Position numbers and translations under genes: made by a program
NCBI GenBank assembly: GCA_907165135.1
Contig: OU015569.1
Coordinates: 4,092,001-4,156,000, forward strand
Length of the DNA stretch: 64,000 nt
Direction of reading: 5' to 3'
Source: Oikopleura dioica
Lineage: Eukaryota > Animalia > Chordata
The notes under the pieces: model-generated
Databases searched by the model: none
What the model was told of the DNA's origin: nothing
What the model saw: the letters and a program-made list of their open reading frames with translations, nothing else
Shown: in pieces, positions 12,220-14,164 of the stretch
How the letters are laid out: each line of letters starts with the position of its first letter
Numbering within the stretch: the first letter of the stretch is position 1

Positions 12220-12393
12220 GATTCATCATTGTTTCCATTCTAAGCTCGACTCAATGGACCGAGACACAATTTTAGTAAAATTTTAAATGCTCTGCACTGT
12301 CACCTACTATCCAAAAATTTAGTAGTCGTCTATTTGATTTTATAGTAGAAAGAAGTCAGTTTAATTGAGTGATTCTTTCAGATCTAAATTAGA

Positions 12394-14164
12394 ATGGGGA
12401 AAATATTCATCGGCAATTTGACCGACAGGGCCGAAGGTCGCGATGTTGAAGACGCCTTCAGAAAATTTGGAAGAATCAAAGAGATTTCTCTTAAAAATGG
12501 CTTCGGTAAATAAGAGTGAATGTACAATTATTTTCAGGAAATTATTAGGCTTTGTCGAGTTTGAAGATGTCCGCGATGCTGAAGACGCAATTCATGAAAT
12601 GAATGGGGAGCGACTTTGCGGCGATAGAATTACTGTCGAGCTGGCGAAAGGTAAACATATTTTATCCACTCGTTTCTTATAAGTTTTGAAAGGCGGCGGC
12701 GGTGGAAGATATCGCTCGCGTTCACGGTCAAGAGGTCGAGACGGACGCAGCTCGTATTGGGACTCCCGAAGATCTGGTAGAGAACGACCGCATCGAACTC
12801 CTTACGCGGTTATGGTCGACAATTTGAGTAGCAGATGCACGTAAGTCGATTCGATTTCTTTGATGGCGAGAATCAAAAAATGGGCGAGACAAGATTTGGT
12901 GCCACTCACTTGGTTTTGTCTCGTTTCTCTCTGTGCTCCAAATCCTGGTCAAAAATTGTTGGGTTGTCGAAAAAGCTAGTTGGATAGTGACCTGTGGTGC
13001 CGTCCGTGATTGATACTGGCATATTCTCTCTATCTCTTGCTACTATTCATGTGTCTTTCATGAGACCATTGATCTGAAATCTTTTGTACTGAATGATCTC
13101 TGGTGTCTACAGCTGAACTCTGTTTTGGCGTGGCTGTTCGATAACCAAGTTGGACGCCTTGGTGGCATAATTGTAGAACTGATTCACATCATGGCCAACT
13201 ACTCTTTTCTTACCCGGTATTGTCACTTTTCTTGACCCATTTCTATTAACTCTAACTTCCAATTATCGCAAGTCCAGTTTACGCTTATGGAGCTGAAATA
13301 TACTCTGATCTCTGAGTTATTTGTTCTTTAGGTGGGCCGAGTTGAAGGACATTTTCCGCAAATTTGGTGAAGTGACATATACAGATGCTCACTACAGATC
13401 TGGTGATGGGAGAGGCGAAGTCTGTTTTTCTTCCCGAGAAGAGCAAGATCGTTGTCTGGACGAAGCCGATGGCATGGATATCAACGGAAGAAGTAAGTCC
13501 CTTCGAAACGCTCAAGTCTTTTAACGTTCTCGATAAGGCATCAAAGTTTCGCCTGGAGAAGGTGCTGATCAACGAGAGCGATCACGCGGAAGATACTCTC
13601 GAAGTCGATCTCGAAGCAGATCCCGTGGCCGAGGTGGTCGAGGCGGAGGTCGAGGAGACAGATCTCGCCCCCATCGAACAGAGTTTACTCTCGGCGTCGA
13701 TAACCTCTCTTCCCGCTGCGAGTATGTCCTCTTATTTCTATCGGCAATAATTTGTGTTCTTAGTTGGGCGGAACTAAAGGATCTCATGCGAAAAGCTGGA
13801 GAAGTTACATACGTTGACGCTCACACCCGCTCAGGTCGAGGTAATTGATTGACTTTGAAACGCCTCCGTACTTAAAATCGCATAGGTCGGGGAGAAGCTT
13901 GCTTTGCTACCCGGGAGGAGTTGTATCGCGCTCTCGAGGACTTACAGGGTATGAAAATCTACGATCGTGCTGTGAGACTGCGCGTCAAAGAAGACGGCGA
14001 TCGAGATGTCCGTCGATCGAGGTAAGTCGGTGTTTGTGGTGACTTGCGGTGAACCGTTTTTATCTAATAGATCCTACTCTCGCTCTCGTAGTCGATCGCG
14101 CTCACGATCCCGCAATGGTGCCCGTTCGAGGTCACGATCGCGAAGCCGTTCCCGCAGCCGATAA
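12394..14164 (+). CDS. SRSF4/5/6-family SR splicing factor with one canonical RRM and two pseudo-RRMs
   Basis: RRM1 KIFIGNL...[19 protein letters not shown]. Pseudo-RRM copy [30 protein letters not shown]; copy [32 protein letters not shown] tracts between the domains and at the C-terminus; 8 exons. Confidence 0.92.

Follow-up and report, generated by a model that had tools for sequence, protein, structure and literature searches.

A predicted three-RRM SR protein of Oikopleura dioica with two distinct types of pseudo-RRM

The window analysed here, a stretch of 64,000 nucleotides of Oikopleura dioica DNA, contains a gene that, judged from its sequence, is a real and conserved three-RRM derivative of SRSF4/5/6 in larvaceans, of a kind not found among the named animal proteins listed in our searches. 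Its predicted product carries a canonical RRM (RRM1) followed by two pseudo-RRMs, referred to below as copy a and copy b. The reading that we favor, with a probability of roughly 0.6, is that this three-RRM SR gene arose by tandem duplication, that both pseudo-RRMs would be readers of RNA and that the copy-a intron would serve as an unproductive-splicing switch.

MATERIALS AND METHODS

Exons were searched one at a time, and whole-protein searches used the natural relatives P0133, P0270 and L007:32–1039. The joined protein model entered scripts only, for frames, self-comparison, dN/dS and the tree. SRSF4/5/6-like proteins were taken from three protein searches (the best 120 rows of each, 306 distinct proteins), and a maximum-likelihood tree was built from 43 pseudo-RRM domains of 76 residues. 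The definition of the pseudo-RRM motif is that of PMC5449602 and PMC4705658. The transcript evidence comes from related lineages (80–87% DNA identity and further), other than the window's strain, and each transcript contig was assembled from short reads and stands for one isoform in one sample.

RESULTS

Gene structure and domain composition

Sequence reading and a scripted frame check place the gene in eight exons on the + strand (12394–14164), with a coding sequence of 1014 nt that translates into 337 amino acids. The exons, and the two introns that precede a Trp codon, are as follows, L007 being the complete mRNA of a relative that is described below:

12394–12505, +: exon 1, start codon and first half of the canonical RRM1 (RNP-2 IFIGNL); Pfam RRM_1, 3e-6; junction as in L007
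12549–12650, +: exon 2, second half of RRM1 (RNP-1 GFGFVEF); Pfam RRM_1, 2.6e-6; junction as in L007
12693–12840, +: exon 3, G/RS linker 1, RPHRTP and β1 of pseudo-RRM a (VDNLSSRC); ends in phase 2
12841–13331, +: intron 3, 491 bp, phase 2, GTAAGT...TTTAG; the sole long intron
13332–13492, +: exon 4, Trp and helix α1 (WAELKD) to the start of β4 of pseudo-RRM a; RRM_1, 1e-6
13538–13721, +: exon 5, end of pseudo-RRM a, RS/RG linker 2, RPHRTE and β1 of pseudo-RRM b; ends in phase 2
13722–13763, +: intron 5, 42 bp, phase 2; position homologous to that of intron 3
13764–13840, +: exon 6, D-WAELKD helix and β2 of pseudo-RRM b; checked against L007
13886–14021, +: exon 7, remainder of pseudo-RRM b; checked against L007
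14071–14164, +: exon 8, RS tail and stop codon

All seven introns have GT–AG borders and, apart from intron 3, are 42–49 bp long, as befits a compact eukaryotic gene. In the protein, RRM1 (residues 1–71) is followed by a G/RS linker (72–107) ending in RPHRTP, pseudo-RRM a (~108–180), an internal, RS/RG-rich linker of 42 residues (181–222) ending in RPHRTE, pseudo-RRM b (~223–296) and an RS tail (297–337) that begins at the end of exon 7, contains long RS runs and is R or S at 31 of its 41 positions. Introns 3 and 5 are both in phase 2 and cut the codon before Trp (AC/G TGG and GA/T TGG, with the slash marking the splice site), and in a self-comparison of the gene model exon 3 is homologous to the second half of exon 5. 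Three RRMs, two of them complete pseudo-RRMs, had been claimed in the initial annotation, and the eight-exon, all-GT–AG model and the junctions of L007 bear this out. The RS/RG linker and HRT(P/E) that it described ahead of each pseudo-RRM are seen as RPHRTP and RPHRTE, and its phase-2 introns before Trp (12841–13331 and 13722–13763) are exact to the base.

Pfam RRM_1 matches exons 1, 2 and 4 individually, and exon 4 matches the pseudo-RRM of SRSF6 in the PDB (3e-9). Three RRM_1 stretches are found by Pfam in the orthologue L007:32–1039, and likewise in P0270 and P0158. The best PDB sequence matches are SRSF1, plant SR34 and SRSF6, with E-values of 5e-20 for RRM1 and 1.6e-18 for the pseudo-RRM of SRSF6, and AlphaFold2 (L007:32–1039, alignment A4) predicts three RRM folds with a domain pLDDT of ~80–90, the linkers and tail being at ~30. 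Foldseek returned generic multi-RRM proteins only for the whole AlphaFold2 model. Among the matches listed, the named top matches are all SRSF4/5/6 or B52, over RRM1 and the pseudo-RRM. The locus is a functional O. dioica gene predicted to encode a splicing factor of the SRSF4/5/6 class of SR proteins.

The RNP aromatics are absent from β1 and β3 of both pseudo-RRMs (VMVDNL, GEVCF). Compared with the α1 heptapeptide SWQDLKD, W, L, K and D are unchanged in both copies and Q has given way to A, and the S is T in copy a (T-WAELKD) and D in copy b (D-WAELKD). The SR definition of Manley and Krainer, from 2010, is said to call for one or two N-terminal RRMs and for a downstream RS domain of at least 50 residues, with more than 40% RS and consecutive RS/SR repeats. 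The 41-residue tail of O. dioica is shorter than those 50 residues; tails are longer in L009/L010 and in P0158. With three RRM_1 domains, the protein is outside this definition by the letter and an SRSF4/5/6 derivative by descent.

Transcripts and the spliced leader

A phmmer search of exon 4 against 1.8 billion protein representatives gave three kinds of match: (i) genomic ORF fragments from close lineages, 92–94% identical; (ii) the spliced fragments P0004 and P0017 from other species, which run from the last part of copy a through the linker and copy b; and (iii) P0133, an unrelated SR protein with two pseudo-RRMs. Protein searches also led to a full-length relative, P0270 (336 amino acids), and to the fragments P0277–79 and P0295, and 18 loci came from JGI metagenome and metatranscriptome contigs scanned with the relatives' alignment A2. 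One contig, L007, represents a complete mRNA. Its protein and that of the window are 93–97% identical across the three RRMs, and its exon junctions, as spliced, coincide with the window model.

The 5′ end of L007 is a leader, ...TCTAACAG, followed by A-ATG, and L009 and L010 carry the same leader; it is this shared spliced leader alone that ties the three contigs to Oikopleura-like animals. Spliced-leader trans-splicing is known for O. dioica. The 30-nt leader is encoded 54 times in the O. dioica genome and nowhere near the SR gene, which fits the spliced-leader trans-splicing of O. dioica. The corresponding acceptor in the window is:

12391–12392, +: spliced-leader AG acceptor, one base before the ATG; the window reads ...aaattAG/aATG

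The mRNA is spliced-leader trans-spliced just before the ATG and includes both pseudo-RRM copies. A single open reading frame spans the two copies in L007–L012, P0270, P0277–79, P0295, P0004 and P0017. Whether both copies occur in one mRNA was a question set beforehand, and the spliced mRNAs of relatives, three of them with the Oikopleura spliced leader, answer it affirmatively. Genomic contigs from other lineages (L019–L022) have the intron before the copy-b Trp.

On the neighborhood of the gene, we note that the spliced-leader acceptor lies ~170 bp downstream of a U2AF1-like gene, a spacing that is compatible with an operon without being proof of one.

These transcripts also bear on the idea that the copies are used alternatively, with the exon 3 donor joined to the exon 6 acceptor to give a two-RRM protein and the three-RRM form being minor. 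Because the two phase-2 introns are homologous, skipping exons 4 and 5 would indeed keep the frame. However, skipping is seen in 0 of ~14 transcript contigs and proteins from at least 10 lineages, all of which have both copies in series, and purifying selection acts on both copies and on the intervening linker, making alternative use highly unlikely. A three-RRM protein with the copies in series is the reading that we retain.

Age of the duplication and selection on the two copies

Copies a and b of the window are identical at 43 of 76 residues (57%) and at 54% of bases, and the identical residues use the same codon in only 16 of 43 cases. So low a DNA identity, with so few shared codons, indicates an old duplication and neither a collapsed nor a duplicated assembly. 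We found no point in support of the contrary view, that the duplication is an artefact of assembly or annotation or that one copy is a decaying remnant. An assembly artefact, which the initial annotation had named as a possible undoing of its claim, is contradicted by the 54% DNA identity, by dN/dS and by the recurrence of the structure in independent assemblies (genomic contigs L019–L022 and many mRNA contigs); a remnant is at odds with dN/dS values of 0–0.04 in both copies. We give this view next to no weight and continue with a genuine, old duplication.

In the maximum-likelihood tree, the b copies form one clade (91/96), and the lineages group in the same way among the a copies as among the b copies. 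At least 10 distinct lineages keep both an a-type and a b-type copy, and the repeated groupings indicate that the duplication predates these lineages. The tree of 76-residue domains leaves the sisterhood of a and b undecided, the single-domain P0012 falling near the a copies with weak support. As read from this tree, the duplication is ancient within the larvacean group and took place before several larvacean lineages.

Comparison of the window with L007 gives a dN/dS of 0.006 for RRM1 and 0.04 for pseudo-RRM a, with synonymous sites saturated (dS ~1.7–2, 4-fold sites 34% identical) and dN at 0.01–0.07. Between L007 and L012, dN/dS is 0.014 for pseudo-RRM a and 0 for pseudo-RRM b, and between L009 and L010 it is 0.026 for copy a and 0.022 for copy b. 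Values of ~0–0.04 indicate that selection maintains both copies. The copies differ at three places:

Residue before Trp: S or T in copy a; D, invariant, in copy b; stable across lineages
Strand motif 1: TYTDAH in copy a; TYVDAH in copy b; stable across lineages
Strand motif 2: GEVCF in copy a; GE(A/C)CF in copy b; stable across lineages

At the level of coding sequence, the copies are two distinct, separately conserved types under strong purifying selection, told apart by S/T versus an invariant D before Trp and by the strand motifs.

Pseudo-RRM paralogs and ancestral features

Three other pseudo-RRM genes, L002, L003 and L005, are present in the O. dioica genome in one copy each, and all have the same phase-2 intron before Trp (~180, 435 and 55 bp, respectively). 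Its presence in all four pseudo-RRM genes of the genome marks this intron as ancestral, and any genomic duplication of the unit would therefore carry it; the other introns of copy a and copy b are not in common. The internal duplication that had been read from the paired introns thus stands as a tandem genomic duplication, but the shared phase-2 intron is not its special mark. A similar correction applies to the helix: both copies do read (T/D)WAELKD, yet this is no peculiarity of the gene, since the paralogs L002 and L003 and the relative P0029 read WADLK(N/D). The change of Q to A, being found in single-domain paralogs too, characterizes the larvacean subfamily rather than the duplicated gene.

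The paralog L003 (G000:C1:4072082–4075192, minus strand), in which the intron before Trp is the one of 435 bp, has a non-canonical G/GA...AG intron inside its pseudo-RRM, between ...DDLHA and AFKKFDG, and G/GA...AG is the only splice there that preserves the frame.

Intron 3 and unproductive splicing

Intron 3 is ~10 times longer than the neighboring introns. A repeat or mobile element was ruled out, as the intron is single copy in the genome, and a known or structured RNA found no Rfam match, no supporting covariation and a folding z-score of only −0.23. With the long intron of L003 it shares short co-linear words (TCCGTGATT and CYGTGGTGCC), each at E ~1, which is chance level. Three features can be placed in it:

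12944–13031, +: conserved intronic block 1, 82.7% identical to the L013 lineage and 84% to L016
13080–13216, +: conserved intronic block 2, 78–79% identity with long invariant runs; ends at the internal donor
13217–13331, +: sub-intron, removed with the internal alternative donor GT at 13217–13218; use in the window's lineage proposed by homology

The blocks are 78–84% identical to the L007 lineage, as against 34% at 4-fold sites, and the 3′ UTR is not alignable. Block 2 also contains a conserved CAG/ at 13110–13112, a candidate acceptor for a putative cassette exon of 104 nt reading ACC TGA; no junction supporting such an exon occurs among the relatives' transcripts.

Retention of intron 3 in the window sequence would give AC-G TAA, an immediate stop. 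In the transcripts L013, L014 and L016, sequence homologous to that ending at 13216 is joined directly to exon 4, and a genomic contig of the same lineage (L020) contains the 253-nt GTACTG...TTTAG segment that is removed at the internal donor. Exon 3 of L013 is contiguous with the retained part of the intron and reads AC-G TAA. The homologous intron of 367 nt is wholly retained in L017, from the species of L009, and L018, from another species (L018:380–520), uses a donor 4 nt downstream, so that GTAA is kept and the reading TGC AGG TAA results from a tandem-donor frameshift. P0278 and P0279, also from other species, start in intron sequence. In all the alternative isoforms (L013/L014/L016, L017 and L018, all from relatives) a stop comes right after exon 3, and retention of the copy-b intron is seen in no transcript among those found.

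In the unproductive splicing of SR genes, a poison exon or a retained intron is coupled to NMD. For genes of the SRSF5 type it has been reported to be universal in animals, in a sample that includes no tunicate (PMC4379411). In SRSF5 orthologues, stop-introducing isoforms go together with conserved non-coding sequence, and transcripts that retain an intron occur next to the alternative region (PMC4379411). In the Oikopleura relatives the stop isoforms are likewise centered on one intron of the pseudo-RRM region. We regard intron 3 as a probable unproductive-splicing element of the SR gene. As a switch, partly shown in relatives, the long copy-a intron would lead to a stop by retention, by the internal donor or by the +4 donor.

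The intron of L017 has features of its own. Its 5′ end (L017:1–400) is not GT (CAG/AACCG, with the boundary ambiguous by 2 nt), and it contains four copies of CTGATTGG (inverted CCAAT), two looser TGATTGG, one TTATTGG and four CACGTG. These motifs might belong to an internal promoter or enhancer, or might act at the RNA level.

DISCUSSION

RNA recognition by the two pseudo-RRMs

In SRSF1 and Gbp2 the α1 WQxLKD helix and its Trp are required for RNA binding (PMC4705658), and S133 and K138 of SRSF1 hydrogen-bond RNA (PMC5449602). Both pseudo-RRMs keep the α1 Trp, Leu, Lys and Asp of what is the RNA-binding helix in SRSF1, Gbp2 and Npl3, and by analogy the protein most likely reads two short purine- or G-rich elements at once. 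As we reconstruct it, the RS/RG linker and pseudo-RRM underwent tandem duplication in the DNA of a larvacean ancestor, as a unit of linker, β1 exon, ancestral phase-2 intron and remaining pseudo-RRM sequence. The phosphorylatable RS linker may then serve as a flexible tether, so that binding would gain in avidity or extend over a bipartite motif. Of the two readers, copy b is probably the more diverged, having Asp where SRSF1 has the RNA-contacting Ser133. With Gln replaced by Ala in both copies and Ser133 by Asp in copy b, the canonical recognition of GGA may have become weaker or disappeared, and the altered or bivalent RNA recognition put forward in the initial annotation is plausible. The link that it drew to non-canonical donors of the window in G/GA context is a speculation.

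It is also conceivable that copy b no longer reads RNA and has become a protein-interaction domain, perhaps for partners in export or in the spliceosome, leaving RNA binding to copy a and RRM1. The third RRM of yeast Gbp2/Hrb1 provides a precedent, that of Gbp2 binding THO and not RNA (PMC4705658). The Asp at the Ser133-equivalent position is invariant in every b copy, the independently duplicated P0158/P0133 lineage has it in its second copy too, and copy b is conserved as strongly as copy a, which argues for some function. However, the helix of copy b still has its W, L, K and D, the EVTYxDAH strand is preserved as well, and nothing in copy b corresponds to the N-terminal extension by which Gbp2 RRM3 is blocked. 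Asp before Trp is also found in some repeats of the multi-pseudo-RRM proteins discussed below. By analogy with Gbp2 such a role for copy b may be entertained, but it seems to us unlikely, and we favor two RNA-reading pseudo-RRMs.

Implications

SR proteins are defined by one or two RRMs, in a layout that is very stable from fungi to humans, and the three-RRM derivative described here comes from animals noted for their compact genes, their trans-splicing and their non-canonical introns. It offers a natural experiment on what a second pseudo-RRM brings, be it avidity, a bipartite motif or a new partner, and the two copies, which differ in having Ser/Thr or Asp before the key Trp, lend themselves to a paired dissection of pseudo-RRM specificity. 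The copy-a intron, an element of 0.5 kb, has a conserved alternative region, which suggests that SR genes may limit themselves by unproductive splicing in larvaceans as well.

A bolder proposal, which we rate as quite improbable, is that the two pseudo-RRM types of the larvacean three-module protein would read different short motifs, and that the protein would aid exon definition and dose itself. If so, copy a would be GGA-like and copy b would have acquired another specificity or a partner protein; a bipartite reader could help to define exons in genomes whose introns are tiny and whose splice sites are degenerate or non-canonical, and in which operons and trans-splicing occur; the protein would set its own dose through conserved elements in the intron of copy a; and the convergent duplication in P0158, an unrelated lineage, would point to a general selective advantage of domain doubling.

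Comparison with known systems

Two W..LKD domains occur, among the matches listed, in the larvacean group and in P0133/P0158 only. On the question of domain architecture, three-RRM SR proteins are not common among named SRSF4/5/6: no named animal member with two pseudo-RRMs is among the matches listed. The three protein searches listed no Oikopleura-named protein among their matches, and a full-text literature search returned no description of a three-RRM SR protein of Oikopleura.

The best named sequence matches among those listed are SRSF4/5/6 (Drosophila B52/SRp55), at 45–52% identity over RRM1 and one pseudo-RRM. Shared features include an RRM1 with RDAEDA, a G/RS linker ending in P-x-R-T, a pseudo-RRM with NLSSRxSW..LKD and EVTY.DAH and a C-terminal tail of RS repeats. 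Unlike them, the Oikopleura protein has a second pseudo-RRM after a second RS/RG linker, so that named members cover ~55% of the three-RRM query. The helix is WAELKD in Oikopleura and WQDLKD in SRSF4/5/6, the β2–β3 loop is longer (R.G.GRGE.CF compared with NEGV.EF) and the RS tail, at 41 residues, is short.

In yeast Gbp2, the SR region is N-terminal. Gbp2 and Hrb1 resemble the Oikopleura protein in being SR-like, with three RRMs of which RRM2 is a pseudo-RRM with a WQxLKD helix (PMC4705658). Gbp2 RRM3, however, is atypical: it does not bind RNA, it carries an N-terminal extension and it is not a recent copy of RRM2. There is no evidence for a common origin of the three-domain layout.

Proteins resembling hnRNP M and unnamed, mostly environmental ones contain two to five W(Q)xLKD-type RRMs per chain and make up at least 60 of the best 150 representatives matched by exon 4; the RRMs of hnRNP M itself are weak PDB matches. 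These multi-pseudo-RRM proteins are only 31–44% identical, and 12 of 12 that were read are without an SR-type RRM1 followed by an RS tail. By this comparison of sequences, they are a different family.

The closest parallel in layout is P0158 (439 amino acids) and P0133 (264 amino acids, truncated), in which RRM1, a pseudo-RRM, an RS linker and a second pseudo-RRM follow one another, with a long RS tail at the end of the full-length P0158. The second copy starts with D-W, in possible convergence with copy b. Both of their copies, in contrast to those of Oikopleura, are of the canonical NEG(V/L)VEF type, and the P0158 copies pair with each other (97/99) inside ordinary SRSF4/5/6, which points to an independent duplication in another lineage.
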